Origin: Chara braunii
Taxonomy: Eukaryota > Plantae > Charophyceae
Assembly (NCBI GenBank): GCA_003427395.1
Contig: BFEA01000034.1
Location: 1,712,323-1,776,322 of the forward strand
DNA: 64,000 nt
Reading direction: 5' to 3'
How positions within the stretch are numbered: position 1 is the first letter of the stretch; every line of letters begins with the position of its first letter. The notes beneath the pieces were generated by a model, which did no database searches, was not told the DNA's origin, and saw nothing but the letters and a program-made list of their open reading frames with translations. Below are positions 5,976 to 45,700 of this stretch, in pieces. The translations under genes were made by a program, and so were the position numbers.

Positions 5976-6320
5976 TGCAACAAAAAAAATGTGGCAATTT
6001 TTTTGCCACGTTGAACCTATGTTGACACCACATTTCAACTGTTTATAAACCGTTGGCTGGGGGGGGGGCATGTGTTCAACACAAACTGAAGGAAACCAAC
6101 ACTGACCGTATATTGGGGACACTGAAACTTGTGTGTTCAACTGTTGGATCAACTGTTGATAGACAGTTGGTCCAACTGTTGATCCATTGTTGGTAGCTTG
6201 TTGAAATCTTGTTGAANAGTTGTTGAAATGTTGTTGAAACCTTGTTGAAATGTGTTGAAACGTGTTGAAAGTGTGTTGGAATGTGTTGAAATGTGTTGGA
6301 CCGTGTTGAAACAGGGTATT
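5976..6320 (+). repeat. Putative left TIR and GTTGAA-rich subterminal repeats of a CACTA/Plavaka-like DNA transposon
   Basis: CAACAAAAAAAATGTGGCAATTTTT (5978-6002) matches the reverse complement of 41647-41671 at 21/25 positions. It is followed by dense (T)GTTGAA repeats. Confidence 0.55.
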
Positions 6321-6520
6321 GGACCGTGCACAATAGCAGTTTCGGTTACGGGTCATTTGCGTTGTCCGGGGGTGGGTTGTAGCTGTGTTTTCCTCGTTTA
6401 AGAACTGAGCACGTTTTGGAGTACGAAGATCACATGGGCGAGCGTTGGGTTTGCGCGCGTCGACCGGGCACGTGATGATTGCAGTGACTGATGGAATTGA
6501 GGGATCAGAGACTGATGATC

Positions 6521-6573
<53 letters not shown>

Positions 6574-6682
6574 TGTTGTAGGCTGCCGAAGAACACATTT
6601 TGGGCCTCGTACAAACAAGGTTGACTTTCGGTGTCCGACGAAGACATTTCGATTAAATGTTGGGCTGCCCTCGTACAAACAA

Positions 6683-7003
6683 GGTTGACTACTGCGGGCC
6701 GAAAATTGTCCAACACGGCGGTGTCCAACACAATTTGGCACGCAGTAGCCAACCTTCCTTTTCTGTGCCCCTAAGATTGTTGTGCGTGGGGAGCCGAAGT
6801 CCACGTCACCCTGCCCTGCAACAAACACTTTTCACCACAGGTTAACAAAATTTTTGGACTTATTCTCTCACGTGTACGGAGCAGACGTGGGAGACCATCG
6901 ATTAAATGCTGGGCTGCCCTCGTACAAACAAGGTTGACTACTGCGGGCCGCAAATTGTCCAACACGGTAGGGTCCGTCACATTTTGGCACGCAGTAGCCA
7001 ACC
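6683..7003. repeat. Two 72-bp inverted-repeat modules, class A (GGTTGACTACTGCGGGCC-N36-GGCACGCAGTAGCCAACC), in a ~250-bp tandem duplication
   Basis: Arms at 6683-6700/6737-6754 and 6932-6949/6986-7003. Confidence 0.9.
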
Positions 7004-7347
7004 TTCCTTTTCAATGCCCCTAAGATTGTTGTGTTCCATTCTATATAAGGCGATTTGGCGTGGGGAGCCTAAGTCCACGTCACCCTGCCCTGCAACAAAC
7101 AAGTTTCACCACAGCTTGACAAAACACATTGTCGTGTCATGTTACCATTACAGAGTCAGCCGCACACACCACTCAATCGCACAAAGATGAGCATTACAAA
7201 TGTTTGTACAATTGTGTATCAAAAATAACAGAAGTTGTGTAGTTATCAGACTGTATGGAGCATACGGCTCGCAATCCTCAGGCGGTGCACGTGCGTGCAA
7301 GCACTCGCTCTCTCTCTCTCTCTTCTGCAAAATTGAAGGTCTTCATA

Positions 7348-7403
<56 letters not shown>

Positions 7404-7948
7404 TCTCTCTCCTGCACCGATTGTGGCCTTCGATTTTGCATCTCCTGGTTCGAAACGTCTACAAAAAGAACCTTTCGTTCCACCGTTTGGTCATTGCCCC
7501 GTATCCTCCCTTCCATGTCGAAAAGTCGCCAAACTGTCCCTCGTTGTTCAGGGTGCGGCGCACAGACTGTCGGTGCGCCTGTCCCCGTCTCCGGCTGCTG
7601 TACTCTGAGGGAGAATGAACTCGATGTCGTAATCGTCATCCGTTATTGTGGTGCTTGGAGGCCCAGGCCTGTGGACAGACGGCGTGCCAGAGCGAAAGAG
7701 CGCTGCTGCCTTCTAGGCCACGGATACGGAACGGTCCAGTTTGAAGACGGAAAAACTCATTACTGTGTCTCGGCTACGGAGAGATGAGACGATTGCCTGC
7801 TTTATAGATACCAATTTTTCTATCTGCTACGCAGCTCGTGTCGTCTTCGTTGTCTGTTCTATCTCACATTGAATGACCATCTCCGCAAAAGCCAGTTGCT
7901 GCATGGTGACGCCCAGGTTCCAGCCTTCCTTCCTCATCTGAAAAACTT

Positions 7949-9325
7949 TTAAGAGTGTCGTCTGAAGGCGGGGGCGCCCCACGGATCGTCGCCGCTCCGT
8001 CTCCACGTCTTGTTCTCCTTCATCTCGGTGCGCATCTTGTTGCGAGCGAGGAGGTGGTGGTCCATTTGCTGCGATCCGACGAGCGGAATTCCCCTATGAC
8101 AGCTCGAATCCCGCATTCTGCTATGTGAGACCGCAGCCCTTCCTCTGCTGTCTCCCCTGCCAGTTTCGCCGTCGCTTGCACCGCCGCGAAAAACGCGTCC
8201 TCTGTCGGGTACAGAGTTGCGTCGTTTGCCGCAGAGAACGCAAAGGCTTTGGCAACGGAACGCAACAGTTTGCCCTTCATTTTCTTCGCGAATGCGGCGC
8301 CCTCGTCCTTCGGTCCTTGCACGGCTCCGCCGCTTGCAAGCACTTTCGTTCGTGACGTTGCGATCGGTGGGAAACAGAAGACACAACGCACAGGAGAGTG
8401 TTAACAACTCAGCGCCTTGTTTTGAATACAGCACTTGCAAAATTGAAGATTCGACTATCAGCTGTGCGTTTACAATGACACTTCTCCGTGCGTAAAGGCG
8501 TGCACCGCGTGGGGGCACGGGATTATGTGATCGGAGTGGGAGGGGAGTCAGTGCGACGAGGGGTTTTTTACCTTTTCCGGCGGCGCTGACGTGCTGTACG
8601 ATTTGTCTGTCACCGACACGCTCCTCAGTGTCGCTGCCATTGCGTGCCTGCCATTCTCCTTCTCTGCGCAGCGTCCTCGAAGGAAATGACGAACCACCTC
8701 TTTCCGAAGCGGCGCTCTGGTCTTCGCCGGTTCTCTCGCTGGCCGACTTGCCGTCGCTGTCGTCGTCCTCATCGGTGTCTTGCGATTGTCTGNGGGAAGA
8801 ATCGTTGTCGTCTCCCTCGTTTCCTGGCTCCTCGTCCTCCGCACCATCTGACTTCTCTGGCGCAGAACGGTCGTGTTCCTCCTCTTCTTCCACTTGGGGT
8901 CCACTGTGCCTGTCGTCAGACCCTCTAATATCGATTGTCTCCATTGTTCTGTCGTCTTTGTAGGATATTCTCTTCTTTGTTCTGCGGTGCGTAGTCGCGC
9001 TTCTATCATCCCGCGATCTTTTTTCCGGGACCCTTGGCGGACGGTTCTCGGCGCCGCTTCCGCGCTTTCCCCGGACGGGGGTCGAGGGGGGCGACTCGTT
9101 ACGTTCTTTCAGCGTTGAAATCTCCCGTGCACTCGAAGGGACTGTAACTTTCGATCCGGATTTGCGGGTGCGCTTGTGCTCCGTTTTCGTAGAGGGGCCG
9201 GCGCCGCTTCTGCAATGCTCTTTCGACTGCTTCTTTTCGGCCCTCGATTTCTTCCGGCACTTGTCCTTCTTTCCCGCGGCTTTCAAAGACCTGCACAGAT
9301 CCTCGTATTTTGGCCTTGGAGCCAT
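7949..9325 (-). CDS. Uncharacterised transposon cargo ORF or exon (Lys/Arg-rich N-terminus, acidic middle)
   Basis: Long ORF from MAPRPKYEDL with low-complexity charged sequence. No recognisable domain; probably spliced or decayed. Confidence 0.35.
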   Translation of the reverse strand: MAPRPKYEDLCRSLKAAGKKDKCRKKSRAEKKQSKEHCRSGAGPSTKTEHKRTRKSGSKVTVPSSAREISTLKERNESPPSTPVRGKRGSGAENRPPRVPEKRSRDDRSATTHRRTKKRISYKDDRTMETIDIRGSDDRHSGPQVEEEEEHDRSAPEKSDGAEDEEPGNEGDDNDSSXRQSQDTDEDDDSDGKSASERTGEDQSAASERGGSSFPSRTLRREGEWQARNGSDTEERVGDRQIVQHVSAAGKGKKPLVALTPLPLRSHNPVPPRGARLYARRSVIVNAQLIVESSILQVLYSKQGAELLTLSCALCLLFPTDRNVTNESACKRRSRARTEGRGRRIREENEGQTVAFRCQSLCVLCGKRRNSVPDRGRVFRGGASDGETGRGDSRGRAAVSHSRMRDSSCHRGIPLVGSQQMDHHLLARNKMRTEMKENKTWRRSGDDPWGAPAFRRHS

Positions 9326-10076
9326 CACCCCTTTTTTCCCACATGCATCAAAGTGGAATAAGAACCACAAGTGCGTCAGTGNNNNNNNNNNNNNNNNNNN
9401 NNNNNNNNNNNNNNNNNNNNNNNNNNNNNNNNNNNNNNNNNNNNNNNNNNNNNNNNNNNNNNNNNNNNNNNNNNNNNNNNNNNNNNNNNNNNNNNNNNNN
9501 NNNNNNNNNNNNNNNNNNNNNNNNNNNNNNNNNNNNNNNNNNNNNNNNNNNNNNNNNNNNNNNNNNNNNNNNNNNNNNNNNNNNNNNNNNNNNNNNNNNN
9601 NNNNNNNNNNNNNNNNNNNNNNNNNNNNNNNNNNNNNNNNNNNNNNNNNNNNNNNNNNNNNNNNNNNNNNNNNNNNNNNNNNNNNNNNNNNNNNNNNNNN
9701 NNNNNNNNNNNNNNNNNNNNNNNNNNNNNNNNNNNNNNNNNNNNNNNNNNNNNNNNNNNNNNNNNNNNNNNNNNNNNNNNNNNNNNNNNNNNNNNNNNNN
9801 NNNNNNNNNNNNNNNNNNNNNNNNNNNNNNNNNNNNNNNNNNNNNNNNNNNNNNNNNNNNNNNNNNNNNNNNNNNNNNNNNNNNNNNNNNNNNNNNNNNN
9901 NNNNNNNNNNNNNNNNNNNNNNNNNNNNNNNNNNNNNNNNNNNNNNNNNNNNNNNNNNNNNNNNNNNNNNNNNNNNNNNNNNNNNNNNNNNNNNNNNNNN
10001 NNNNNNNNNNNNNNNNNNNNNNNNNNNNNNNNNNNNNNNNNNNNNNNNNNNNNNNNNNNNNNNNNNNNNNNNNNNN

Positions 10077-11109
10077 AGTTTTGATAACTTCCAGTACGTC
10101 CTTGGCCGTCAGATCCTTTGTCGCGGTTCTTCCAAGAAATTGTATTACGGTGGTAGCGATACAACACACATAAACACCACCGTCCGTGTGATTGTTCTGT
10201 TGCGGGCATTCCGCATGCACAAGTTTACTTCCTTCCAGATCCCTGCATGTCACCCACGAAAAATGAACCTTTTTGGGTTTCAAAGCCTGCAAATTCGATG
10301 CCTCGTGAAGGTACTCGTGCCACAAAAGTGTTCACAACGCCGTCCATTCGTCTCGGTTTTTTTCTCTCATTGAGTCAACGACGATAGCAATGGGAGGGTC
10401 GGATATGCGGCTGTCCGCAGTGACCTCCAAGAAGGACCTCGCATTCAGCAACAAAAGAAGAATCCAGTGTTTGTTACGGTTCACTGGTATCACAGTGACC
10501 GGCGCGCGTCGCAGTTCGTTGCTCAGTCGATGCAATTTTTGTGGTCTCTTCTTAATTGCGTCCTCCCATCTTTTTTTCGTCATTTCCAAATTTTTGATTG
10601 GCGACGACCTCGGGGTGCCAGAAAGTTATGCAGACATGAACATAAGACCTGTCCTGGCCCCGCCCAACCTCTTCATACACAGACTGCAAATAAATGTCAA
10701 TAATATTGTCGTTCAGCCATCCGTCTTCCGACAACCGTTCAATGTCGGATTTTGATACGGGTATGGCGTGTTGCGGAGATTTCCATGTAAAAGGGAACAA
10801 TTCGACCACGTCAGTGATGTCGGTCTGCTCATCTCTCACTCTTGTCTTGTCCCCTGCTTTCCGTTTTCCCATACAACAGAAAGACTGTTCCCCGCAGGAC
10901 TGGAGCCACTCTGCTGCACCCTCAGTCAGTAAATCGTACATTTTCGCGCACCATGGGTCTGATAACATGTCCTGCCAGCTCTGTGCTGACCTCTGGCTCC
11001 TCGATGGCAACAACGGTTTTCCGTCCCTGGCACCATTACCCGTTTCGGTGCGCTGGTATGGCCCCTTCGCAACGGCCGACCAATTACTACTGTTGTGCGA
11101 CTCTGCCAT
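10077..11109 (-). pseudogene. Ulp1/SENP-family (peptidase C48) SUMO protease, frameshifted
   Basis: DIERLSEDGWLNDNIIDIYL, IPVNRNKHWILLLL (catalytic His), VVDS (Asp), CPQQNNHTDGGVY (Gln retained; the usual DCG reads DGG). Split over several ORFs and runs into the N-gap. Confidence 0.88.
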
Positions 11110-11370
11110 CGTTGATCCCCTTCTCTTACCTGCACCCTGTTACTCTATGTTCCGTGTCGCTTCTCCCCCTTCGCCCCCTCCCCTGTTACTCTGCAAGCGT
11201 CAGAACCAGGAATTAAGCAAGACATGAACGCCAGAACGCATGCAAGTAAATACATATAAAACGGTTGCGACAGAGACACAGAGAGAGAGCCCTATTCCGG
11301 ACCCAGATATAGAGACAATCGCCACGAACAAAGAAACTGTTGGATGGATCGCCATTCTGATGTTGACCGA

Positions 11371-11437
11371 AGTTGGCTACTGCGGGCCAAAAATACACAT
11401 GCACATCGATGCGTGTGCCGGTGGCCCGCAGTAGTCA

Positions 11438-11440
<3 letters not shown>
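11371..11440. repeat. 70-bp inverted-repeat module, class A
   Basis: AGTTGGCTACTGCGGGCC-N34-GGCCCGCAGTAGTCAACC, next to (CT)n. Confidence 0.9.
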
Positions 11441-13458: not shown

Positions 13459-13526
<68 letters not shown>

Positions 13527-13984: not shown

Positions 13985-14005
13985 TATATATATATATATA
14001 TATAT

Positions 14006-19395: not shown

Positions 19396-19559
19396 TCCAA
19401 AATAAGAGCAACTTGCACAATGAGAAACCTGTCACTTTTCAATTGAGTCGTGAAAATTGTAACTTGGAGTGAGGAAACTCTATGACAATGAAAAAACAAG
19501 TAGGGAGAACATGCAGAAAACATTATCTATGATGAAAAATACAATTGTTGTTAACCTTC

Positions 19560-26355: not shown

Positions 26356-26482
26356 TCTCACAACCGTGTTGTTCCATCTTGCACGATCGTGCCGGTCTGA
26401 AATACAGTTTCGCCGCTTGAAAAATTTACCGATGTTTGAACTCCATCTTTACAAAATGACTATTGTCGGTCAAACGCTTCTG

Positions 26483-26595
<113 letters not shown>

Positions 26596-26722
26596 GAAAT
26601 ACAAAGGCTAAACGCATGCTGTAGTCTAAAATTGCGACTACGCCCACCACATATTTTTCTCGGAAAAACATTCAGCCTTTGAAATTCAGGTTTTTTTTTT
26701 TTTTGTAATTCCCTGTACACTT

Positions 26723-29439
26723 CTAGAGTATATATCTATTGAACAAAAAACTGTCCTCTCTCTCTTTTGCATGCTTCTTCAAGCCCCACTGTGGTTTACA
26801 AAAACGAGGAATAATGTGAACGGTCTCGATGATGGTGTCAATCGTTATGACGGTACTGTGCTGATGACTGTTTACCTTCTCCCATTGCAACTTCTTACAA
26901 CCTCTTGTGTGTTCCCTTTCGCTGTCCACCTCTTTGTACCATTGCACAAATCAACACATGTGCATCTCCGCAACACCCCTGTGCAAGTGTTCATGACGAA
27001 AAACATGGTTACTGATGCATACCGTATGTTGTCATTCCCACCTCTCACTGCAACATCGCTATGCACAACTCTCCTGTGGAACAATGGTGAAGCTCTTGCG
27101 GTGCGTCCCGTCGTATGTGCAGGCGATAGTCAAGTGTGTTCGAGTGTGTATCACTTGGTCATCAGATGGAGGTTGATAGCCGTTCTCTGTCATGAACGTC
27201 GTGAGTGCAGCTCCAAAATTATCTCTGCAGGGAAGCTCATTAAGTATTCTCAACGCCGCGTCGCTTATACCCTCCACCTCCGGCAAATGCACACCGTTCA
27301 TCTGGAACCACCGGAGTTGTAGAGTTGTTGTGTCGCGCGTTGCGAGGGCATTAATTCCGGTGGCCATGCAGTCTGTTACGGATTACCAATTTTCTGTCGA
27401 CCTCTTTTTTCGTTTTCTCACAATCTTCATCTCATCCTGCAAAGCCAATGAGCGTCGGACAAGATTCACCATCTGGGAAGCAGCCTTGCGCTTGTTCGAT
27501 GCCAGATATGGTTGTTTGCAGAACCTCCGATGATGATGCTCCCACACATCAGCTGCAAAGGTGTCAGAGACACCGGATCGCTCTATGTATGTTCTCAGAT
27601 GCACAAGGTCGTGCAACTTCGGAATTTTCCAATCCGAGGTTTGATATTTTCTCATCTTCGTTTTTATACTCGTTATGAAATCACCTATCAATGCGTCACA
27701 TACATCGAGAGAAGCCGCAGTGTGGGTCAACTTACGAAACACATGTATGTACATTTCCATGAGTTTGATGAAACAAGTGGAAATGGATTTGTCTGTCGCA
27801 CGCAGGAAGGTATCACAAATAATAAACACGCAAACTGTCATAACAGATCGATTTTGCTTCGCTTCAGATCGCCCTTCTCTTGAAAAGAAATCACAACCTG
27901 TGGTCATGGGCAACACGAGCTGCAGGTATGTCCTCACACATCTCTCACTGATGCTCTGCAACCTTGCATCCATCTCGTGCAATATCTCGCTTTGCGCGAT
28001 ATCCGGCAACTTCTTATAAGTTGTTGCCTTGAATGCATCTATCATATGCAAGAAAATGTCGTGTTCAATGGTGTACATACGGCCGGTTGCAAAACGAGAT
28101 GGTAATCTAGTTGAGGATCGTCACCATGCGGACCCCTGTAGAATCCCCAAAGGCCGTTCTCTTGAACACGCTTATGCATGTTCAATTCTGACATTCGTGC
28201 CTCTGCGGCACGACGAATATCGTTGTCCCCATTGCTGAAGCAGTTCGCAGCAAGTTGTGTCTCTACCGTCTGCAATCTCCTGCAGTTGGTGAAATCGGCG
28301 ATGACATCGAAATTGTCTTTGGACACTGTGCATGTTGGACAAACACCGAATTTCACATATGCAAGGGCACAACTTTCATGATAGTCCTGTATATAGTTCA
28401 TGACGAAATGGTGGACTGTTATCTCGCCGAACCACTCCGTTATAACTATCATGCCGTCATGGGATACCTCCTTTACGGATTACAATACTATTGACAACGC
28501 TTTATGCAATATCACAGCTTTCCGTTTTCTAAACGCGGTGGAGTGCAGACCCCAGTCCTTGTCACGTGGCCGGTGTTGAAGCACAGGAAGATACGTAAGG
28601 AGTGTGGCGTCCGATGCGCGATCAGCTATTGACATCATCAAAGGATACGTTGTCTGCTTTTGACGACCGTCTACATGAGTCTTGTCTAAATACAGAGACA
28701 GAGGGATGACATAACGTGTTTTACCATTCGTGTTCACACCCTTGTCCGCTCTGATAATAGTTTGGACATGGTGACTCAACTGGCTCGTGCGAGAGCCACA
28801 TATATTGATCCCCTCCCCGGGAGGTTGTATTTCGAGGCAAGAAACCGTTTCAACGTTGTGCAGTGCAGCACATACGAGGTCAGCGAACGTTATGCGCCAG
28901 TTGCGGTACCACAAAATGGCGTGCGCTTCCTCTGGCCAATCATCACTACGTAGATTGTTCTCTTGCCACCCTGCAGCCTTTGCCTGGCGGCTTGCCCATG
29001 TCATACACTCACGACTGTTACGAAATGCGATATTTCTTGGGTCGAATCTAGGATTCTTGAGGAGTGACAACAAACAGTCAACGTCAGTTTGGGACATGCC
29101 CACACCGCCCCTACATGAAAAAATCAATGCCACAAGTTTGCGAGAGTTGTCGAATGCCTCTGTGTGTTGTTCTTGTTGTTCTTCGGATCTGCAGTCTGCC
29201 TCTACATCGGGAGGGGCCTCAACCTCCTCGCTTTCCCCACTGGCCAGATTAATGGGACCACTATTTGACGGTCCACCGATAACCTCCCCAACTATCTCTT
29301 GTGTCGTGCTCCTCTCTTCCACAGCGGACGGACATGCCCGCGCTCGGTGTGAGTTCATCGTCCGTAATGACATGAAAGGCCGCCCACAGTCACACACGTG
29401 ACTCACACCATCCATTACAACTACGTGCGAGAAATACAA
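26723..29439 (-). pseudogene. Plavaka-type (CACTA/Mirage-related) transposase, disrupted
   Basis: N-terminal C2H2-like finger CDCGRPF...HRARAC; IPLSLYLDKTH...YPLMMSI; YIQDYHE...CPTC; WKIPKLHDLVH...IERSG...WEHHH..FCKQPYLASNKR; C-terminal IDTIIETVHIIPRF...FLFNRY. Confidence 0.85.
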
Positions 29440-29714
29440 AGTGATGTCACTTAAGACCTATCGCAGATGGAGGATGCGCGTTCGGTTTGAAATTCATGAG
29501 TTCCTTTCACACTACCCCCACCCCCGTCCCCCCTCTCCCTCCCGTCGACTCAACACCGCTGCTACGCACTGCTGACAGATTCCAAGACAACGACAACATT
29601 CCAAGCGGTATTAAAATCAAGAATTGTGGTGAATTTTTTTCCTTTTTTTTTTTTTTTTTCTTCGAGGCATGCCACATTTTCTTTCTAAGTGTCACATCCT
29701 CGTTTCCTGAGCGC

Positions 29715-30343: not shown

Positions 30344-32116
30344 TCAACGCAGTCCACTACCAATGTTTGTATCACCGCTCTCCACCATGGTCTCTGGTGT
30401 GCAGTCAAACCATGTGTGAGCACGAAGTATTTCCTCTCCTGTTGATACTGCCGGGTGCAATGTAGCATCAGAACCGCTGGCTACAGCCCCGTGCAGGAGG
30501 CAACTAAGGTCCAGGCCCCACGTAAGTGATGTTGCGAGGACAGCCTCTCTGTTGACCAAGACAAACCATGACTTCCCCATACGTGACCATCTTTTTTCGT
30601 TCGAGCATGATCTCATAATGATCGTCAATGCTGCATACTGGATTGCGCCCTCAGGTGTTGCCTCCTTCAGCACGACACGCAATAGTAAATGGGGATTAGA
30701 GAATACACGTGCCAACCTAAGAATCGCATGTGCCCACCTTTTTGACGCTTGTCCTCCCCCTACTACCATATCCCAGTAGGCATCATATTCCTCACCCTCC
30801 TCGTCGCTGCTCACATCGNTGTCACTCACTTCCACCTCATAGTTAGGGGCCCTCGCATCTTTTTCATTGTTCCTCACTCTTGTTTCTTCAATGTCATATC
30901 CGAAATCGATCGGTAAAGAAAAGTCTTCGAACCCTTATTCCCGTTGTTGTTCTTTAATTGTCCACTCATTGAACATATCTTCTTCTTCTACCTCCTCCGT
31001 GGACATTGTGTTTATTAGAGAACGCACGATGGAGACTGTTCTCACAATTTTTTCCCCTGCTGAAGTGTGTCCATCTGTTGCATGAAGTGCAACATCTGCT
31101 TCCCTGGCCACCAACTTTCATCCTTCTTTCCTTGACCTCTTTCTGTCCACCTCAGAAGTCGCAATGCTGAGGCGATACAAAGTTGCCATTAATATTTCAT
31201 CCCACAATGGAGTACCACATGCGACATCCTCGTCCACACGCCGCACCCTATAGTTAATGAGGTCATTGCCCGCCAATGCTTGCTCTGTCACATCATGCAA
31301 TGCCTGATGTATGACATTCTGATCACCAGGTTTCTTTTTCATGAAATCCGCCAGTTGGTCGAGTAAAACATACTCCACCCCGTTTGCAATAATTACTGGA
31401 AGATCTTGGAAGTCTTGCGGGGGAGCTTGCGGTATGTCCTTCAAACGTGAGAGTACTAAAATTTATGTTGCACCGCTCTTCATCTCGTCCTTAGAATCTT
31501 CAACAAGCATTCCCCATTTCTTCGCCTGTGTCATCCGCATCTGCTTGAAATCGGTTGGCATGTATGTTCCACCCTTCTGCCGCTTTGTCATATCCACGTC
31601 CCCTTCATCGGGCATCCCTTCTGTGCACATCCAACCAACCACTTTTCTCAAAACTGTATGCACTGGTATCAGCATTGTTGTCTACACGCAAATCATGCGC
31701 CTCAGTGAACCGTGCCAATAGCATCCGTGCTCTGAGCGACTCCTCTCCGTTCGCAGCGATGCTTGCACGAATGTTCACTCTGACATCGAAGTAACTCGGC
31801 ACTCTCTCCGTGAGTAGTCGAAGTTCCCCGTCGTCATCGTAGTGGATGCCCTCCTCCGCGTATTGCATCACATCTTGAAGAGTTGCCCTCGCCTGCGCCG
31901 CTGACATCGACATGATGGTTGTGCTTTTGTCTATGTGTCTGTAAGTGGAACGACAAAACGATGATTTCAAGCTCCGTGAGGGTTTGTTTAATGTTGTTTG
32001 TGTTTCCCTCAGCTGGAAGTATGCGGTCGTTCGACGCTGCCAGTCAGTACACGGACGTCATACGAGGGTTGGCTATTGGGTGCCATTTTTTCTTCGAATC
32101 AATGAGATCGAAATGA
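30344..32116 (-). pseudogene. Uncharacterised disrupted cargo gene
   Basis: Chain of same-strand, globular-looking ORFs (31970-31605, 31675-31463, 31444-31118, 30877-30344). No recognisable family. Confidence 0.45.
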
Positions 32117-32429
32117 ATCCAGCACGCAGTAGTCAACTCCTCCGACCCTGCTCTCACTCTCCGCCCAAACCACTTTCCATTTGTGTCTGACAGTGGCAGG
32201 GGGTGTGTCGCGGTCCAATGACATGTTTCCCCCAACCACCCCGCCCCCCCGCCCCCCAACCCCGAATCTAGAAACACGCTCACCCAACCAAAGACAAAGC
32301 CACCATGACACCCCCAGCTTCCCAAACGTGTGAAGCATTGTACGTATCACAGGACCAGGAACCATTCATTCATAAAGCCATGGACGGCAGAGTACAACTT
32401 ACCTAAGACGGAATAGTCCTCCGCCAAGA

Positions 32430-32858: not shown

Positions 32859-35718
32859 TGTCTGTATTTGTGTATGTGTCTGTGTGTGTCTGTCTGTGTG
32901 TGTGTATGTCTGTGTGGCTTCTCCACATCAGCGCCCTGAGTTCAAGCGCTCAATACCACAGCACAAACTCATGTCCGTGTGTCTGTGTATCTATATGTCC
33001 GTGTGTCTGTGTCTGTGCGTGTGTATGTCCGTGTGTGTGAGTATGTATGTGTATGTGTCCGTGTCAGTGTATGTCTGTGTGTCTGTGTCTGTCTGTGTCT
33101 CTATATGTGTATGTCCGTGTGTTCGTCTGTGTGTGTGTGACATGTATGTGTGTCTGTGTATGTCCATGTGTCTGTGTATGTATGTGTGTATGTGTGTATG
33201 TGTGTATGTAAGTGTGTCTGTGTATGTCCGTGTGCCTGTGTATGTCGGTGTGCCTGTGTATGTCTGTGTGCCTGTGTATGTAAGTGTGTTTGTGTATGTC
33301 TGTGTGCCTGTGTATGTCCGTGTGTCACAGAAAGTCACGGAATGTCACAAACACGGAAAGTATGATAGTCACTTCCCGTCACCACCGCAGACATCATGAG
33401 TGTGTTTCAGTTGGGAGTATGCATGTTGTAGGGAGAAGAAAACAAACATGGGGATCGCAGGACATGGGATATAGGAGCAAGAAAGTGAGGGCAGGCTTGA
33501 GTTTCAAGGTACGCAGGCAATGATACCTTCCTCGACGAAAACAACGGCGTACACTGTAGACTGAATGCTTGGGAAGATGCAGATTTTGGTTCGACAATTC
33601 TGCTTCGGTGGTTCAACCGTGCGGCGCACAAGACAACACAAACAGACAGAGAATTAGTGAACAATGTGTCACACACACTCACACAAACTCTACGATACAC
33701 ACAGACTCTCGGTCATTGATGTGTTATGAACATGATTGTCCGCTGCAATTTCGCCAGCCCTTACTCACATAGACTCTCGTACACGCCCATACATGCAGAG
33801 AAGGAAGGGGAGAGGAAGTAGAGTGCCACAACGCGGAGAAAAGAAAACGCAGTGGAAGACTTACAGAAGCAAAGTGACAGAATACACAGTACAGTGAATT
33901 CTCTCTACATATGCATTGAGCCTTCCCCGCTGCACTTACGATAGAGTGGACATGTCACCTTGCATTGTCACACATGTCGCAGTCTGACATTAAGCAGAAT
34001 GACGTCACCTCCATCAGACTGCAGAAAAGGAGTAGATGTCGTTGACCACAAAACAAAATCAATCATTATAACCAGTATCCAATAAGAGAGTCAAGAGTTC
34101 CTGGATTCAACGCTCAACAAAGTATCACGTCCCCTTCGTTACCAGAAGTTATCTGCCCGGCGTTGTCTGCGCTCATCATCAACAACACGAATTGCGAAGT
34201 CCAGGTAAGAACAAATCATCTCCACATATTCTCTCTGTTGTGTACCTCACAATGGCAGAAGTCTTCACACCATGAGCCGCAAGTGTGTTCACAGCATGCA
34301 TCGTCAACAACCAGAATGAGCACAAGTCCTCACTGTTATGAACTTGGTTGCCTGACGAATTTTATCGCCAGTCACACACAGACAATCTCACACATGCCCA
34401 TACATGCATAAGAGAAGAGGAGAGAGGAGACAGAGTCCACACTGCACACAAGTGAAAATAAGCAGCGGAAGACAGACATGCACAGGTGGGGAAAGAACAC
34501 GCAGTGTTTCTTACTCTCTGACACAACTCCCAACAACCAATCACAAGAAAGAACCTGCGAAGATCATAATTGGAAAGGTCACTGATGATGAGTCACTCAT
34601 ACAATTATCGTAACAGAGTTTATTCCAGTATCTCGCCACACTCAGAACTCACACCCCACTCTCTATCCTACACCCAGTTAGTAGCACTGCATCAGAACAG
34701 CCTCCCAGAGGCCAGCGCCAACCACCCTGATGAAGAACAGGTCCTGCGATGATGTCTTCAGTGCCGATGGACAACTCTGACGAAGGAACAGGCAGCTATG
34801 GCTGCCACCACCTACGAACCACCACTGTAGAGCCTCGGTCCAGCCCGACCATACGCAGATACCCCCAGGGGTAGATGCGCTGAGGATGCCTCAGCTATGG
34901 CAGACTCAGATGTGGCCGGCTATGGCTGTTGTCACGGTGCGTCTCAGGATGCCGCCTGCAGACCAACACCGCCACCAACTTGCTTGGCTTCTCCAACACT
35001 GTGTAGCGAGAAATGAACTGCCAAAAGTCCTGAACCGGTAGGCCTATCCTATCTATAGACTCTCTAGACCTAGACCGGACTGACTGACCGACCGGTACCG
35101 TGCTGTTTCGGTCTCTCGGCATCTACCGGACCCGGCTATAGGCTATAGGACCGTCTAGCAGCATAGGCCACTTAGGGTCTGTCAGTCCTAGGGGTAGCCC
35201 GGGCCTGCTATAGGGTAGCTGTAGGAATTCGGTTAGTACCGGGCCTGTATTTTCCCTGATTTACAGATCTGTCCCTCACGAATTTCTTTACAGGCAGGTC
35301 TCTCGGTTAGACCTCAACCAAATAAAATTACGAATCTAACTCTACGGGTTAGTGTACAGCCTCGCAGTCAATCATCTCATGCAGCACACATTTGCACAGC
35401 TCATGCAGCACACAGTTGCACAGCACACACCACACAGCAGCTCATGCAGCATACAACACACAGCACACAGCAGGATAGCCAGACCGTTGTTGGCCCCATA
35501 CTCGTGCAGCACACGTCGTGCGCCGGCGACAGTACACAGCACACAACACACTACAGTACACAGCACAGCACACTATAGTACAGCCTCTGTGCGCCGACGC
35601 AGGCTGCAGAAAACAGCAAGTCAATGCAAGTGCATACAGTCAACACCGCACCTACACACTCATACACATTATATTTGTGTGTGTGCGAACTGGTCTCAGT
35701 GCAGTCTTCACTGTGTTC

Positions 35719-36417
35719 TTATTTCATGTTTTTCTTTGCTGCATTGCCTTTGCACGGCGCTCCTTTCCTCTTCGACGACCCCACTGGAGTGTCACCGCCT
35801 TTGCGTGATGCTGCTGTCTTCTCAGACACCCCCTTCCCTGCCTGCGTTTCTCTCTCGACCTGCCTTGCAGCATTCATCTGCCGTAGCTTTTCCGCTCTCT
35901 TCTGCTCGTCGATAATGCCTTCATATTTGTATACGCAGTGAGCCTTGGCCAAGTTATCAACCAGCCTCAGGTCCTTCAGTTGGATCGTCACCCTCTTGCA
36001 GTGGATAGCAATGATGTTTGTTCTCTCGAAATGGTTTATGAGATATGCTTCGACCGCTTCCAGCAACGCACGTATGGCGTTCATATGAAACCTGATAGAT
36101 TGCCCTGGTGCGATTTCTTTCTCGACGACCTCGCGCACCACCCTCATGAACGGCCTCAAAGCGATGCACAAGTGAGTAGATCGTTGGAGTTGCCGAATTT
36201 CTGCCAATGCTGCCATCCCTGCGCGGCGCCTGCGCTTTGGAACTGGGGCAGCGGTTACTTTTGCTTTTGTGGAACTCCCGAGTCCACGAGGCGGCCTAGA
36301 TGTGCACTGCTTCTTCTTCTTCTCTGCCCTCCCTGTCACGTGCTCCACAGGGGTGTCACCATCGTCGGGTTCTGCATTAGAACATCCCCCATCATTTGCT
36401 GTTTCCGGGCCGTCGAC
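35719..36417 (-). CDS. Divergent histone H3-fold (CENH3-like) protein with ~75-aa basic C-terminal extension
   Basis: PKRRRRAGMAALAEIRQLQRSTHLCIALRPFMRVVREV...IRF..NAIRALLEAVEAYLINHFERTNIIAIHCKRVTIQLKDLRLV aligns along the whole H3 fold (36240-35947). The frame is open back to 36417 with no ATG upstream of the fold, so it is probably the last exon or domain of a larger gene. Confidence 0.9.
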   Translation of the reverse strand, partial: VDGPETANDGGCSNAEPDDGDTPVEHVTGRAEKKKKQCTSRPPRGLGSSTKAKVTAAPVPKRRRRAGMAALAEIRQLQRSTHLCIALRPFMRVVREVVEKEIAPGQSIRFHMNAIRALLEAVEAYLINHFERTNIIAIHCKRVTIQLKDLRLVDNLAKAHCVYKYEGIIDEQKRAEKLRQMNAARQVERETQAGKGVSEKTAASRKGGDTPVGSSKRKGAPCKGNAAKKNMK

Positions 36418-38157
36418 CTAAGTTGGCAAATGTGAAATGTCATGCTGCTGCTGTGTTGTTGGTTGTGCATTCGATGCAGCACGAGCGTCGTCATCACCCA
36501 CGTATTGAATGTATCGCAGCAGTCCATCTATGTACGTGAGTTGGAAAGAGACACCCAGAGGGTCTCTGAATCTCATGCACATCTGTTCACCATGCTCATA
36601 TGTCATGGGACAGACGACAGGGACCCACCCAACTTGAAGAAGTGATGTGCACCCGTGTCTGCTTCGTATGCCCTCCAGAAACATGTCATCCGTCGAGGGT
36701 CATGCTTGCTCGGTGCACGAGTCTTCCACGATCAACCACATCGCCTGGTCATTATGGGAGTCATATCCCATGCACACCATCTGTCGTTCTTCCTCCCTTA
36801 TCTTCTCCCAGCAACGCTGCGCGTGTTCCTCCAGCAATCCCCGGTCCTTCACATAAGGATTGCAAACGGAGACACGTGTCACCACCACCAAGAACTACTA
36901 ATGCTCCACAATGCCAGCATGCATCCAACCCAAAGGCAGCCACTCACCAAATTGCATTCTTGCTGCCAGTGTCACTTTGCCATCAACAACTGCTGGATGC
37001 AAAGAACCAGGTACCCATACATGTCACGGGCCACATGCTGGTACAACTGCCCTTCTTGAATCACATGGGCCTCAATGTTACTGGCTGCAACCACAATCTT
37101 CCACATTGCCACATGGTCCCATACGTCCATACATATGTCAACAAATGTGGCTTTTTTCCCCCTTACGTGGACGTATGTGATGCACTTCTCACCGCTAAAC
37201 ACCATCCCTTCAGCGAGGGCCAACTCGACAGGATTGCCAAGTGGGTGGTCGAAGATGCATGCATCGCGTGACCGGCATGTCATCGCCTCCTTTTCGTCTG
37301 CAGTCGCTTCTCTGTCGAAATGACGGAAGGAAAACATGTCGTTCACGTAATGCACGCTCCACACATTGCCCATGATATCACGCACTTGCATTTTAACATG
37401 GCCATATCCAAATGGGATTGCAGATGGCACCCAACCCCATCGAGGATCCCTTCTTGCATCGTCCTGGCTAACTGGCGTCCCCCCCTTGCGTTGCTGGCCA
37501 CCCAACACCCACAGTTGTCCGCAGTCAAAGTTGTCATATACGAAATCGTTGAGCCTCAACTCACCCTTTGCCTGTAGAACACGATACATCTCCACTGCGT
37601 AGTGGCAAGCATCATCGGTCGTTGCCCCATCATTCAACCTCAACACTCTGTCATAGATAAATGACAGACATACGTTACGCCATGTTCCTTTCTTTAGGGC
37701 AGGAACAACAACCCACTGATCAACAACCTTGAAAGCAAAGCAATGGACACCTCCAACGATTCCTGGCTGAACACGACCTGGCACCAAATTCACATCATAC
37801 GGGTATCTATCTCCTGCCATTGTCTTTGTCACATTTTCAGACAATGCATCCACTGTGAGGACCCTCGCTGCCAACATCTTCCTCGTTTCTCTCTCCACCC
37901 ACCTTCTCTATCTCAGCATTGTTCCCTCGTGCACCGCTATCGTTGCCATCCACGTCAGCAAGCATCTGCTCAGTTTCCATATGAATCGTGGCAAACACCT
38001 CTTCACATGCAGCAGTGGTTGTGCCCCCGCCGCTGGTCTGCTGATGAACTGTCGTTTCGTTGACCTCACTTGCAGGGGAACGACCACTTAGAATGACTTC
38101 TGTTTCCATGACGTTGGTCTCTCCAGCATTGACGGCTGTTACAATGGCGGGTTTCAT
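36418..38157 (-). pseudogene. Uncharacterised disrupted ORF chain upstream of, and partly in frame with, the H3 fold
   Basis: 36891-36700 and 36684-36418 are in the H3 frame, separated only by TGA/TAG stops. A 308-aa ORF at 37898-36972 lies just upstream in another frame. Confidence 0.55.
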
Positions 38158-38290: not shown

Positions 38291-38293
<3 letters not shown>

Positions 38294-38485
38294 TGTCTAC
38301 TGCGGGCCAGAACGACGTTATTGAGTAACGTTTAACCGTATTATGGCACGCAGTAGTCAACCGACTCATTCGTAGGCTGAGACGGGTTAAATAGGCGAGC
38401 CTGGCGATAAGAACATAATGACATTAAAGCAGACACTTCATACATGTATACATATATGCATATGAGAGAATGAGAGAGAGAGAGA

Positions 38486-38526
<41 letters not shown>

Positions 38527-38920
38527 GTTGGCTACTACGGGCTAGAACGACGTTATTGAGTAACGTTTAACCCTGTTATGGCACGCAGTAAGTAGTCAAC
38601 CGAGTCATTCGTAGGCTGAGACAGGGGTTGAATAGGCGAACCTGGCGACAAGAACATAATGACATTAAAGCAGACAGTTCATACATGTATACATATATGC
38701 ATATGAGAGAATGAGAGAGAGGGAGAGAGGTTGGCTATTGCGGGCCAGAACGACGTTATTGAGTAATGTTTAACCCTATTATGGCACGCAGTAGTCAACC
38801 GAGTCATTCGTAGGCTGAGACAGGGGTTGAATAGGCAAACCTGGCGACAAGAACATAATGACTTTAAAGCAGACACTCGATACATGTATACATATATGCA
38901 TATGAGAGAGAGAGAGAGAG
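38291..38920. repeat. Three tandem ~200-235-bp units, each with a class A inverted-repeat module and (GA)n
   Basis: Modules at 38291-38362, 38526-38601, 38729-38800. Confidence 0.9.
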
Positions 38921-38925: not shown

Positions 38926-39682
38926 TCAAACTTCTTTAACGAGACGTTCAACCACGACTTTACACCTCTTATAGAGTGCCCTTAGTCGGTCATTGATGTG
39001 GAGTCCTTTCTTGCAATGTTGACAATCGATGGCCTCCACACGACGCTCTGCGTTTGCTACGACCTTCGACATCATCTCTTTTGCAAAAGAAATGAGATGG
39101 GATATACAGTCCGCCACGAGCCTTGCCATTTGTCGTTTATTCGCACTTGACACGAACTGTTCAAATATTTTCATGGTCATAGGTACTGCTGACTCTTCAT
39201 TGCTTGTCAACGGTGCTTTGCTGGCGACGACGCAAGGAAAATTGTGTCGAATTTCATGAGATTGAAAGGATTTGATATCTTTGCAGTCTAGCAACAAGTG
39301 TGCCGCTGACTCACAGACACTTCGACCTGTGTTGCTATCGCACATCCGCATAGTGAGATCATCTTCCCGGCTTGCATTCGCGACTTGCGCATTGTATGTT
39401 TTCATGGTTTCTACGGGGTTCGGCGTTACAGACAATTGTCCCGATGCCAGGCGGCCTCTGGTGTACTGAAGAGAACATACAATATCGGCGCAGCTGTTGA
39501 GCAGAGACCTCAAGTTCCCATTAAGGCCATCGTATCCCATATGTGCACCATCGGTCTGCAGGCGATGGTTAAGAGTGTAGTGCTCTATGGTCTCCGTGCA
39601 ATGACGGATGCAGTCCTCGGCAAAAGCCAAGAGGTCTACAAGACTTTTCGACGAGGCTGTCAGCGGACCGCTGTTCAGTTCC
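38926..39682 (-). CDS. Uncharacterised helical cargo ORF, 5' end in gap
   Basis: About 250 codons open from the gap to the stop. CQHC near the C-terminus. Confidence 0.4.
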
Positions 39683-40288
39683 NNNNNNNNNNNNNNNNNN
39701 NNNNNNNNNNNNNNNNNNNNNNNNNNNNNNNNNNNNNNNNNNNNNNNNNNNNNNNNNNNNNNNNNNNNNNNNNNNNNNNNNNNNNNNNNNNNNNNNNNNN
39801 NNNNNNNNNNNNNNNNNNNNNNNNNNNNNNNNNNNNNNNNNNNNNNNNNNNNNNNNNNNNNNNNNNNNNNNNNNNNNNNNNNNNNNNNNNNNNNNNNNNN
39901 NNNNNNNNNNNNNNNNNNNNNNNNNNNNNNNNNNNNNNNNNNNNNNNNNNNNNNNNNNNNNNNNNNNNNNNNNNNNNNNNNNNNNNNNNNNNNNNNNNNN
40001 NNNNNNNNNNNNNNNNNNNNNNNNNNNNNNNNNNNNNNNNNNNNNNNNNNNNNNNNNNNNNNNNNNNNNNNNNNNNNNNNNNNNNNNNNNNNNNNNNNNN
40101 NNNNNNNNNNNNNNNNNNNNNNNNNNNNNNNNNNNNNNNNNNNNNNNNNNNNNNNNNNNNNNNNNNNNNNNNNNNNNNNNNNNNNNNNNNNNNNNNNNNN
40201 NNNNNNNNNNNNNNNNNNNNNNNNNNNNNNNNNNNNNNNNNNNNNNNNNNNNNNNNNNNNNNNNNNNNNNNNNNNNNNNNNNNNNNNN

Positions 40289-40357: not shown

Positions 40358-41479
40358 CCCCCTGTGCCCAGACTTTTGCAGATGCTTAAGCGTTGAAGAA
40401 CGTCACACACACGTGGAGAGCACAAGGACAAGGAGGTGTTGATGGGGACACGAAGCACGAAGGAGAATGTGAAAACGGAGAGGCTGAAAATGAAGACAAC
40501 GAAAAACATCAACGAACGTCAACAGCAATGAGGTGAAACTGGTGTCTAGACAACTAGGTACCGGTAGGGAAAAGAAAAAAAGCAGGCTCAACCCAGGCCA
40601 ACGAAGAGTAGGCCTTGGAAAAAAAGTACATGTGGTATACAAGGCAAACAAAACGGTACTACTGGCACAATAGGCCAAAATGCTGTAGTAAGAAAAAGCA
40701 AGGCCAAAATGGAGAGGCACCGTGGTGGCACCGGACCTAAAAAAAAAAAAAAGGAACCGGTGCACGCCGCAAGGGGGCACAAGAGAGAGAGTTACGGAGG
40801 GTCCAGCGTCGTGACAAAAAAATAAATGGCCTCGGCACAAAAACAAAAAAAACGGACCTGCGGGAAAAAAAAAGGGGCTCGGCCTAGGCCAACCAAGCGG
40901 GGGCCTTCGAAAAAAAAGGCACCTGTGCTATGACGGGCAAACAAAACTACCCGATGCCAACATAGGCCGAGACATCGATAAAAAACGCAGGGCCACAATG
41001 AAGAGGCACCGTAATGACACGATAGCAAAAACGAAGGGGTGGGGGGAAAGGGGGGGGAGCCTGTGGGCGCGGAACGCACCTTAGTCGCACAGGACCTCGA
41101 CAAAAAAGGCGAAATTGGAGACGCGCCGTAGTCGCACGGGACCTTGACAAAAAAGGCGAAACTGGAGACGTGCCGTAGCCGATGCCACCATAGGTCGAGA
41201 GACCAACAAAAAACATAGGGCCACAATGACAAAATATGTCAGATTAAGGAAGGATATATGTTTTTTTTTTTTTTTCCTTTTCGGGTCTCTCAAGTTAACC
41301 CCCCATTTCTTTTTATTTTGGTCTGCGCATCCACAACATCAAGCCTTCCCGATAAACATCAACGTTGACTGCTGCGGGCCAGCCCAGCACAAACGGCCGC
41401 CATTTGCAACATCATTTCCACGCACTTGTCAACTCCCAGATCCGGAGAAGGTTAAAAAAAAAAAAATCTCCAACGTGGA

Positions 41480-41673
41480 CGTGTTGGAATCATGTTGAAC
41501 ATATGTTGATCAACAGTTGAAAACATATAGCCCACATGTTGGCAAACGGTTGAAAACATACAAACGGCCGGTCAAAACGATTGGGCCAACCATTTCACCC
41601 TCTTCATATGTTGGTCCCAACTTGTATCGAAGTTGAAACCATGATGAAAATTTGCCACAATTTTTCTGCTGTC
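41480..41673 (-). repeat. Putative right TIR and subterminal region
   Basis: rc CAGCAGAAAAATTGTGGCAAATTTT, preceded by GTTGA/CAAC motifs. Confidence 0.55.
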
Positions 41674-42721: not shown

Positions 42722-45700
42722 AGAAGACTTAAGCCCGTGGAGTATTAACGATAACCTATAAGCACAAACCAAGCTAAACAAAAATACACAAGAACCAGAA
42801 AGGACTGTAAAATATCACCTATGGCTACTATCTACTATCTATGCCATCTTCTTATACCCACTGCAAGTGAGAGCATAGACATGTAGCGAACAAAAGCAGA
42901 CGAAAACCAAGGTGAAAAACCACCCCTAATACGGGGGAAAGTATAATCCCTCGGAGGATTCTAAGAGAAGAACACTGCGCTCCTATCCCAAACCAAGACC
43001 TTACTGCCTGTCTCCAGCGACCTGGCCTGTTTTCAAGCAACCGAGTGCAGCAGGTTGCAGAGGACCCTTCTTTTACTACTTCTGAAGCAGCCACGAACTG
43101 AATACCAGACGATTGTTTTCCACCCATGCAATTGATTTCCGCAGGACCCAAGTTTCCTCAAACCATCGAAGGTCCTGGGTTGAGGGATTACTGCCCACTT
43201 TCCTCCGCCAATCAGCCTGGATAGCATGTTTGAGATGGAGGGTAAAGGAAGATCGAATATGTTTGTTAGAGCACTCTTTGTTATCGAATACCCTCTCGTT
43301 GCGACTCTGCAAGATGACAAAGAAACTGGCTGCACGAATATTTTGGGCCACGTAGCCCCATCCTTTGGATTTTGAGAAACTTGAAGGAATGCCGCCCATC
43401 AAAGTCCACTCCTTAGTCCAAATGAAGGTTGTGTTGGAGATTCTGCACCAATGCTTGATCACCCAATTGGCAGGGCAATCCCACCAAAGATGAGTAAAAG
43501 ACTCGAAGGCTCATTCACATATAATACATTTCATATCAATTTTCATTCCTCTTTCTGCCATCCAAACTGCAGATGGAGTAAAAACAAGGGATACTAACCA
43601 TAACAGCGAGGCATGTCTTTGATTTGGGATCAGTTTAGATTGTTCCCAGCACGACGTAAGATCCTCATCAATATCTGCAGATTCGGTTAGCAGACAACAC
43701 GTGGATGCTTTAAGGGTTGATTAACTGTATATCCAATTTTAATCGTGTAGTCCACCAAGGTAGCATTTGAACCTCTGTTCCCCTTAGTGTTCCATTCCCA
43801 TTGAGCAGGATCAAGTTTCAATTGAGACACCGGATTGCCTTCCCCAAATAATTGACAGTTGAGTGAACCGTCTGAACGTGGTTCTTCAAGTACTCTAATC
43901 TGATGAAGCTCCGAACCTACCGGTGGTGCAGACGGTACGTCATCCTGCAACAGTAAGTCGGGGCCTACCACTGTCCATGATTGGAAATCCCGTTTGCCTT
44001 CATTGTTAATAGACATTAGCTTCCAAACTTGCTTATGGGGTGGTTGGGAAACTCCAAACCAAGTGTTGGGGGGATTTGTACCCTCTGCGGCCAAGATTGC
44101 CTTCCAATTATCAGGAATATCGTCAATAAGTGAGTCCCTTCGAACTTGAACCTCGATAAAGCGTGCTTGGCCTAGCGGTTCTCTCAGTTTCTCCACTGAG
44201 ATCCAGTTCCCCAAAATGGGGTCCCACATGTCCTTAATGCGCAGTATTCCCTTTTTGATCCATGAACGACCGAAACTGGTTGAAGAGGAGTCAGTTTTGA
44301 ACCAATCACCTGAGACATCCCATATTCTGGGATTCTCGAATAGTGGTTGGGAGAGCACCTCAGCTTTGGTCTCGGGTTCTACCCATACATCCGGACAAAG
44401 TTTCTTCCAGGCATGAACAATGGCCGACCAGAAAGGAGATTTAATGTGTCGGCATTGGAACGAGTACATGAATAAGCATGTCCAGACGTCTTCTGGTCGA
44501 CTTAGATTCCACTCTTGACTGAGGATGTGTTCAGCCAGGTAAACCCAGTGAGGGATAGGGAACATTAATGTCGCTTTCACTATCCACAGACAAAGCATTG
44601 CAGCAATTTGTATGAACGGATCTAGCATACCTAACCCACCCTCTTCACGTGGGAAGCATAACATCTCCCAGGCCACTTTAGGAATGAAGGAATCGTCATT
44701 ATTTGAAAAAGGTTTCCAAATAAATTGAGCAGCCCTACTTTTAATGAGGGCATAGGACAACTTACCTATGCCCCGCACTTTACCCACGTACCACAGGAGT
44801 GCGAACAGAGTACAGTTTACAACCATGGCTCTCCCGAGTAGAGACAAATGTGGTGCTTGGGCCCATGATGCTAATCGTTGGAAGATTCTCTGAGTCAATA
44901 AACTTTTCTGTGCATCTGAGCATTTACCTAGCGCTATTTAGACTCTGAGAAAACGTTCAGATTCTTCATCGCTGATCCTCTTCATGCCCTATTCCACACA
45001 GAGCGAATAGTCCTGGGGGAGGAAGTACGCAGATTTGTGTCAGTTTATTGCGGCTTCAGAGAGATTTGCATATTCATCCAGGCATAACTTGAGAGCAGCC
45101 AGTGACTCAGGTGAATTCTGAGATACCACGAATAAGTTATCTGCTAAGGCTTTTACCTTGAGGGGCGAAGGGCCCGCAGATAGTCCCCTGATTAGTGAAT
45201 GAGCTCGGATATTCTTGAGTAGTCCCTTCATTTGAATAGCAAAAAGTAAGGGAGCCAAAGGGCAGCCTTGACGCAATGATCTCGTCAAGGAGAATTCGCC
45301 CGAAAGTCTTTCATTTACCAACACAGCAGCGGTCGAGAGCGAATAGAGGGCAATTACCCAGCACTGAAAGTTCGAGCCGAAGCCCATATGATCCAACGTG
45401 GTCAAAACATATGACCAATTAACACAGTCATATGCTTTTTCCAAGTCAAGAAGGAAAACTGCAATGTCTAGATTCTCATTTTGTACTATCTCAAGGGTTT
45501 CGATGGCGGTTTCAACATTATCAAAGATTAATCTACCTTTGATGAAAGCTGCCTGATCCGAATGAACTATTTCAGGCATATAACAACCGAGCCTTCTAAC
45601 AAGTACTTTCGCTAGAATCTTGTATGAAACGTTCAAAACTGAAATAGGCCTCCAGTTACGGATCTGAGACTTCTCACCTTTCTTAAATAAAACCGAGATT

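Follow-up and report, generated by a model that had tools for sequence, protein, structure and literature searches.

Does a DNA transposon of the alga Chara braunii carry a histone of its own and, if so, which kind of histone? The question is raised by an open reading frame in the window, i.e., the whole 64,000-nucleotide stretch of contig BFEA01000034.1 (positions 1,712,323 to 1,776,322) that was analyzed. The first-pass annotation had described this frame as a CENH3-like histone gene with a basic C-terminal tail, carried between the putative TIRs of a Plavaka transposon.

The histone frame and the gene that contains it

The frame at 35719-36417 (-) was uninterrupted over 232 aa and held the complete H3 fold that had been reported, with H3 as the top PDB matches and a three-residue insertion in loop 1. 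No ATG occurred upstream of residue 68. The frame started immediately 3' of a TAG codon (36418-36420), the place at which paralogs carried CAG, GAG, or CTG. This TAG is a CAG-to-TAG nonsense mutation that made the apparent start of the frame; a splice acceptor at 36418 was rejected because the change falls in a frame that is continuous in the paralogs.

The 232 codons formed the C-terminal end of an intronless gene of about 817 codons (Table 1). All close relatives of the 232-aa sequence were C. braunii proteins. One of these, CBR_g34262 (P0008), matched across all 232 residues at 89% identity, and the match was located at its C-terminus. At the CBR_g34262 locus (L002; family loci are given as L numbers) the 817-codon frame was open but for one stop. 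The window gene differed from it by two frameshifting deletions and four stops, and is a pseudogene. The gene was broken in every copy examined. What had been taken for a stand-alone histone gene is thus the last 232 codons of a damaged fusion gene.

The encoded protein was comprised, in order, of an acidic leader, two copies of a ~190-aa domain, a linker, the H3 fold, and an extension, and the open in-frame fusion was conserved across all subfamilies. The N-terminal repeats had no Pfam, PDB, or atlas match, their fold searches were empty, and AlphaFold models of the N-terminal domain reached pLDDT values of 30 and 49. A suspected likeness to B3 domains gained no support. Of the ~75 K/R-rich residues described past the H3 end, an extension of ~70 residues stood (76 from the end of helix 3, with 19 K/R and 8 D/E), but its first ~31 residues were of mixed charge and helix-like, and the sequence was clearly basic only thereafter. 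The basic tail ended in a motif common to three subfamilies.

Table 1. Coordinates of features in the window, listed from the 5' end of the H3-bearing copy.
Feature	Position	Strand	Evidence
5' TIR of the H3-bearing copy (CAGCAGAAAAATTGTGG...)	41647..41671	-	Homology with L001, L002, L003, and L009 begins here, flanks unrelated; same terminus in L010/L011
Degenerate subterminal ~72-bp palindromic unit	41364..41436	.	Motif scan; folds no better than shuffles
Cargo gene A, 5' part lost in N gap 39683-40288	38929..39682	-	Same position in 9 loci; dN/dS about 0.2-0.3 between subfamilies; no Pfam/PDB match
235-bp tandem repeats ahead of the H3-fusion gene, with three ~72-bp palindromic units (GGTTGACTACTGCG ... 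CGCAGTAGTCAACC)	38291..38800	.	Motif scan; z = -6.2 for one unit
H3-fold fusion gene, broken, ~817 codons, intronless	35719..38157	-	ATG at 38157; 94.5% DNA identity to L002
H3-fusion gene, deletions	5 nt near 37840; 16 nt near 37017	-	Comparison with L002
H3-fusion gene, stops	36898-36900, 36895-36897, 36700-36702, 36418-36420	-	Comparison with L002
N-terminal domain repeat 1 (approximate ends)	37290..37830	-	Internal repeat, E 2e-6, 24% identity
N-terminal domain repeat 2 (approximate ends)	36493..37030	-	Internal repeat and alignment; dN/dS 0.22-0.33 between subfamilies for the two repeats
H3-like domain (alpha-N helix and histone fold)	35950..36240	-	Pfam Histone E 1.9e-22; PDB H3 E 9e-22; dN/dS 0.12-0.34
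C-terminal extension: conserved charged helix-like segment, then basic tail	35722..35949	-	Family sequence comparison
Cargo gene 3, broken; half palindrome upstream at about 32125-32138	30347..32057	-	Same position in L004-L012; motif scan
Plavaka transposase, broken	26720..29457	-	PF18759 E 5e-8 on one piece
Plavaka transposase, breaks	stop 28480-28482, 1-nt deletion near 28082, stop 27383-27385	-	Sequence comparison
3' half of a separate copy (subfamily B): Ulp1/SUMO-protease-like gene, further ORF, palindromes, 3' TIR	5978..11440	-	96% to L004/L005

A family of Plavaka elements with the fusion gene

Twelve other loci were fetched via the family proteins. In 12/12 of them a co-oriented Plavaka transposase lay downstream of the H3-fusion gene, so the linkage expected by the first-pass annotation was borne out. 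Wherever sequence was available the order was: 5' TIR, gene A, H3 fusion, gene 3, transposase, Ulp1-like protease, last gene, and 3' TIR. Whole elements with ~25-bp TIRs and a 2-bp TSD were present in L010 (23,851 bp; TSD TT) and L011 (19,430 bp; TSD CA); L004 had no clear TSD. The 5' ends were CAACA/CAGCA at seven loci, and the 3' ends were mostly TGTTG, with TGATG in L010. The L004 transposase was a 935-codon open frame with DDE-type, CxxC, and HxxxH motifs (the last two between the catalytic D and E), and PF18759 matched a paralog at E 7e-25. The Ulp1-like gene had a weak Peptidase_C48 match (E 0.003). In C. braunii the H3 fusion is carried by Plavaka DNA transposons of the CMCT clade, 19-24 kb long, that form a family with about 85 annotated proteins and at least five subfamilies in which fold and transposase were inherited together.

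The PF18759 transposase with CxxC and HxxxH, the CA..TG ends, and the 2-bp TSDs of L010 and L011 agree with the CMCT clade (Kojima 2025, PMC12730594), in which PlavakaB members carry the chromatin enzyme TET/JBP where the Chara element has H3-fold cargo. The Chara termini (CAACA/CAGCA..TGTTG, one TGATG) fit neither PlavakaA nor PlavakaB exactly, being neither CATCA..TGATG, the PlavakaB termini, nor TGT..ACA. A PlavakaB CATCA terminus was discarded, as it was seen only in L001, whose flank ends in CAT. The element also departs from described Plavaka in its green algal host, its size, its six genes, and its cargo.

No histone partner (H4, H2A, or H2B) was found in the element, and an H2A/H2B doublet suspected by eye in gene A had no Pfam or PDB match. 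Single-protein scans, which detect close relatives only, returned no relatives in viral or metagenome contigs, and a viral origin of the fold was rejected. Viral histones and histone doublets (reviewed in PMC9145170) are also divergent, fused histone folds encoded by a genomic parasite; the Chara case differs in being a transposon, in lacking a partner histone within the element, and in its lack of viral relatives in those scans. Within single copies, L010 had lost the Ulp1-like gene through an internal deletion (20100-20600), and L004 was flanked by 225-bp inverted-repeat arms (1644-1866 and 24893-25117).

In the window, the H3-bearing copy extended from 41671 to 26349, where element homology ended. 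Its transposase was broken and, as annotated, co-oriented with the H3 frame. The claim that the frame sits inside TIRs held on one side: the 5' TIR is its own, but the 3' end is lost beyond 26349, and the TIR at 5978 is the end of a copy from a different subfamily. No TIR was found between 26200-26950 and the right end. The segment at 5978-11440 was only 65-70% identical to the subfamily of the H3-bearing copy (L008/L009), versus 96% to subfamily B, and the ends at 5978 and 41671 had no common TSD. A single hybrid element with a 15-kb insertion was rejected on these two grounds and the halves were treated as two copies. They may also be parts of an old recombinant, given that the breaks of the two halves lie close to one and the same palindrome.

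Several further features surrounded these copies. A second TIR end (CAACAGAAAAAAAAAG, -) at 14735 paired with the 3' TIR at 5978, and the flanks showed a 2-bp CA duplication (a 2-bp match has a chance of 1 in 16); the 8.8-kb interval may be another element of this group, either hybrid or shortened by deletion. The region 11771-13815 held a palindrome variant (GGTCGGTAGGTGCAT) of the same geometry as the units described below. A tandem satellite with 69+81-bp subunits (17100-19400) was not counted as part of the element, being absent from that place in other copies; a satellite-related inverted-repeat insertion within the H3-fusion gene of L007 (9412-9769) hints at a MITE-derived satellite. A LINE fragment was duplicated (19564-22114 and 23445-26007, 89%) along with inverted pieces (22128-22473 and 26009-26353) that adjoin the break of the Plavaka copy. 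Short repeats lay at 13867-14157 and 62629-63560, with a 94% copy within L007 (15563-15657). Beside the 5' end of the element was a broken L1-like LINE (43076-49408, -; gag-like, endonuclease, and reverse transcriptase pieces), and 51780-61466 was a single 3228-codon open frame with many low-complexity runs, by eye resembling a Vps8-type trafficking protein. An Rfam search at the gathering threshold gave no match.

A ~72-bp palindromic unit with inverted arms of 14-19 bp recurred near both ends of the elements; most genes also had it about 130-300 bp upstream, frequently as an array. The window contained 15 half-sites versus about 1 in shuffles, and one unit folded better than shuffles (z about -6). 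The geometry was fixed; the arms varied among subfamilies A/B1, B2/B3, C, and D yet stayed self-complementary: GGTTGACTACTGCG (A, B1), GGTTCACTACTGCG (L010, L011), GGTTCACTAGTGGG (C), and GGTTGGGAAGTTGG (D). Arm mismatches occurred in both orientations, so protein-binding half-sites would suit the arms better than an RNA stem. Four arm variants on one geometry amount to subfamily-specific arrays of non-coding motifs of the VANDAL/VANC type.

Transcription was followed in three poly(A) libraries, with 6-13% of each library sampled and reads accepted down to 85% identity. Read depth never exceeded 1.6 over the H3-fusion gene, its palindromes, or gene A, i.e., there was almost no RNA for the window gene. 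The only covered part was an insertion at 34300-35380, common to the window, L002, L008, and L009 and absent from L001 and L003. It drew many poly(A) reads that came from other copies and were mostly 90-95% alike, as a transcribed high-copy repeat does.

The fold compared with H3 and CENH3

The fold was surveyed in 17 family members and was about 50% identical to H3. Ten residues were invariant or nearly so: R83, F84, E105, T107, N108, H113, R116, T118, D123, and L126. Twelve were replaced: Y41, T45, R49, K56, R63, Q68, K79, D106, L109, C110, R128, and R131. Residue 68 was M/L/V and residue 128 was D in 17/17 members, while F84 and T107 were each present in 17/17; A98 and N108 were of H3 type. 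We take the kept residues to be the H4-facing core and the central DNA contacts, and the replaced ones to be the entry/exit DNA contacts and all main modification sites, with a rewired H3-H3' surface. Residue 90, in the chaperone-specificity region of H3, was R throughout the family. Canonical H3/H3.3 proteins have ~136 aa and identities over 90%; measured against them, the fold had no N-tail (K4, K9, K27, K36) and had lost K56 and K79. The residue-level description given earlier for the window frame (M at position 68, loop 1 longer by three, F84 and T107 retained, canonical N-tail absent) was confirmed throughout.

The CENH3 hallmarks read into the fold were a mixture. As in CENH3/CENP-A, identity to H3 was about 50%, loop 1 was longer, Q68 was absent, and no canonical tail was present. 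Comparison by eye added likenesses to plant CENH3: residue 68 was hydrophobic, some subfamilies had IP at 62-63, loop 1 opened with AP, and one distant subfamily (GBG89535/90511) had LIPFAPF as in Brachypodium CENH3. F84, A98, T107, and N108 were nevertheless H3-type. In CENH3, F84 is replaced, usually by W as in plant CENH3s (a feature cited in PMC3156773), where the family had F; T107 is the weaker criterion, T being found also in fungal CENH3-type matches. CENH3 is, further, a small free-standing protein from one or few loci, unlike this multicopy, mobile domain of an ~817-aa fusion with a long C-terminal extension.

In a quick tree search over 147 folds, the 25 family members grouped together (SH-aLRT 100), and the long stem of this clade led to no resolved sister. 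Plant CENH3 and the fold of GBG61392 were compared with the family by eye, outside this tree. A published survey (bioRxiv 10.1101/2021.11.30.470311, supplementary file 7) auto-labelled 86 Chara proteins cenH3 by best HMM, and its text is silent on them. GBG61392, whose fold is truncated in the table, scored 190 and had an unrelated Gly/Arg-rich N-terminus; the others scored 74-132 and nearly all had transposon-family sequences. Other divergent H3s also bear the cenH3 label in this table. GBG61392 is a candidate for the host CENH3, separate from the transposon family. The transposon fold, with F84 in 17/17, about 85 copies, and this separate host candidate, appears to fail as a CENH3 member, and the stand-alone CENH3-like histone of the first-pass annotation gives way to a fusion domain in a pseudogene copy.

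The survey file was also the source of four diverged sequences: GBG83333/GBG85499, with the same N-terminal domain and a very divergent fold, and GBG89535/GBG90511, with an H3/CENH3-like alpha-N, LIPFAPF, a very long loop 1, and then gene-3 sequence. These are key to rooting the family.

If derived from CENH3, the fold could direct the element, or where it inserts, toward centromeric chromatin, one of three roles proposed at the outset. The longer loop 1, the loss of Q68 and R49, the IP/AP and LIPFAPF residues, and the automatic cenH3 label would agree with this role. The four H3-type residues and the HMM scores well below that of GBG61392, from a model that labels other divergent H3s alike, argue the other way. 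CENP-C binds the C-terminus of CENH3, and that end is extended by ~70 residues in the family. Copies were spread over many contigs among LINEs and genes, and the window copy lay 10 kb from a long host ORF. The centromeric role gained no support here and is very unlikely.

Selection on the fold and its possible role

Selection was estimated by Nei-Gojobori counts over 90 fold codons between subfamilies. The dN/dS of the fold was 0.12-0.34, close to that of the transposase (0.10-0.20), and that of the N-terminal repeats was 0.22-0.39; these ratios are rough because dS between subfamilies is near saturation. The fold pN/pS was 0.25-0.49, with bootstrap upper limits < 0.7 for distant pairs, and differences were mostly at third positions (26/10/52, window vs L004). 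Purifying selection on the fold spanned a dS of 1-2.6. Among 13 copies, fold and transposase distances agreed (Spearman 0.86, Mantel p 0.0005) and nearest neighbors mostly coincided, which shows co-inheritance of the two and does not speak to co-function. Several genes drifted near neutrally in very close copies, as expected of dead insertions. In this family, the constraint on the histone part has been as strict as that on the transposase.

Two outcomes would speak against a histone carried by the transposon: a single-copy gene orthologous to the host CENH3, or copies that evolve neutrally and without linkage to the transposase. Neither was observed, because the fold is multicopy, Plavaka-linked in 12/12 loci, and under purifying selection. 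A passenger of this kind is known from Dothideomycete hAT transposons that captured histone H3 (Dhillon et al. 2019, PMC6710886). There, as in Chara, H3-derived sequence sits in a TIR DNA transposon with tens or hundreds of mostly dead copies; the fungal sequence is a RIP-inactivated retrocopy of canonical H3 described as passive, whereas the Chara element is a Plavaka with a remodelled fold, a 640-aa N-terminal part, and purifying selection across old subfamilies. That the Chara fold is likewise a captured fragment amplified neutrally, or else the host's own CENH3 gene, is highly improbable. All copies seen were broken and silent, and close copies differ almost neutrally, as passive cargo would. 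Selection on the fold over such distances, a fusion open in all subfamilies, and co-inheritance with the transposase contradict it, and about 85 copies next to a separate candidate, GBG61392, do not suit a host CENH3 gene.

Of the three roles first proposed, action on silenced nucleosomes fits best. The fold would pair with host H4 and be deposited in place of H3 on the element's own DNA, at its promoters. Without K4, K9, K27, K36, K56, and K79 the particle would be unable to bear repressive tail marks, and without the DNA-entry contacts Y41, T45, R49, and R63 its hold on DNA would be loose. The tandem N-terminal domain, or another element protein, would supply the sequence specificity by binding the subfamily-specific palindromes in front of the element's genes; with no known fold, the N-terminal domain is linked to the palindromes by co-occurrence alone. 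The outcome would be self-directed anti-silencing, like that of VANC for VANDAL elements.

We hold this H3-substitute reading tentatively, at somewhat short of an even chance. It would account for the 12/12 linkage and gene order, the TIRs and TSDs of L010 and L011, purifying selection and co-inheritance, and retention of the H4-facing and core residues F84, E105, T107, N108, R83, R116, H113, D123, and L126 alongside loss of modification sites and entry contacts. Subfamily-specific palindromes upstream of most genes and a Ulp1-like protease, as in KIU-type VANDALs, also agree with it. The near-absence of RNA and the breakage of every copy examined stand against it. Nucleosome assembly with host H3 is uncertain given the altered H3-H3' interface (D106, L109, C110, R128 to D, R131), and the 640-residue N-terminal part may hinder incorporation.

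The rewired interface, alike across the family in R128 to D (17/17), would also suit a fold that serves outside nucleosomes, as a dimerization or DNA-bending module (cf. TAFs, NF-Y) in an element-specific transcription factor or transpososome helper. Fusion to a large duplicated domain, and palindromes placed like promoter sites, agree with such a module. However, the family keeps the alpha-N helix, R83, R116/T118, and all the H4-facing residues, and the domain scores as H3 rather than as another histone-fold class; we consider the module unlikely. The conserved H4-binding core and the family-wide R90 would in turn serve a sink or dominant negative, the third role proposed at first: by tying up H4 or H3-H4 chaperones, the protein would weaken silencing throughout the genome, with no preference for any sequence. 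This would leave the equally conserved N-terminal repeats and the subfamily-specific palindromes unexplained, and an effect on this scale would burden the host and favor rival elements; such a sink is quite unlikely.

The nearest parallel to the H3-substitute reading is the VANDAL/VANC system. KIU-type VANDALs of Arabidopsis carry Ulp1 (PMC13317346) and, like the Chara element, are large multigene DNA transposons with subfamily-specific arrays of short non-coding motifs. The Chara element differs in being a Plavaka with TIRs (VANDALs are non-TIR MULEs), in its histone-fold candidate effector, and in its fixed-geometry palindromes. Homology to VANC or MULE was absent: the transposase is Plavaka and the N-terminal domain had no Pfam match.

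In a stronger form of the H3-substitute reading, which is somewhat unlikely as a whole, the protein would be a sequence-targeted histone: a DNA-binding tandem domain joined to a tail-less, possibly CENH3-derived H3 fold would assemble with host H4, at the ~72-bp palindromes of the element, into tetrasome- or nucleosome-like particles that cannot be marked, and so keep the element's promoters from heterochromatin.

Chromatin readers, SET domains, TET enzymes (among them the TET/JBP anti-methylation enzymes of fungal Plavaka and other transposons, PMC12730594), and Ulp1 proteases (PMC13317346) are all known as captured cargo of transposons, and fungal hATs hold passive H3 copies (PMC6710886). 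In literature of incomplete coverage, no paper was found on a transposon-borne, remodelled core-histone fold under long purifying selection. For C. braunii, the firm consequence is that about 85 of the 86 automatic cenH3 labels are not host CENH3 and nearly all are this Plavaka family. Because the fold was selected as strictly as the transposase, the transposon probably once used it to manage the chromatin on its own DNA. If the fold acts on the chromatin of the element, this would be a new anti-silencing route in which the histone is replaced rather than its marks edited, and a natural example of a sequence-targeted histone.
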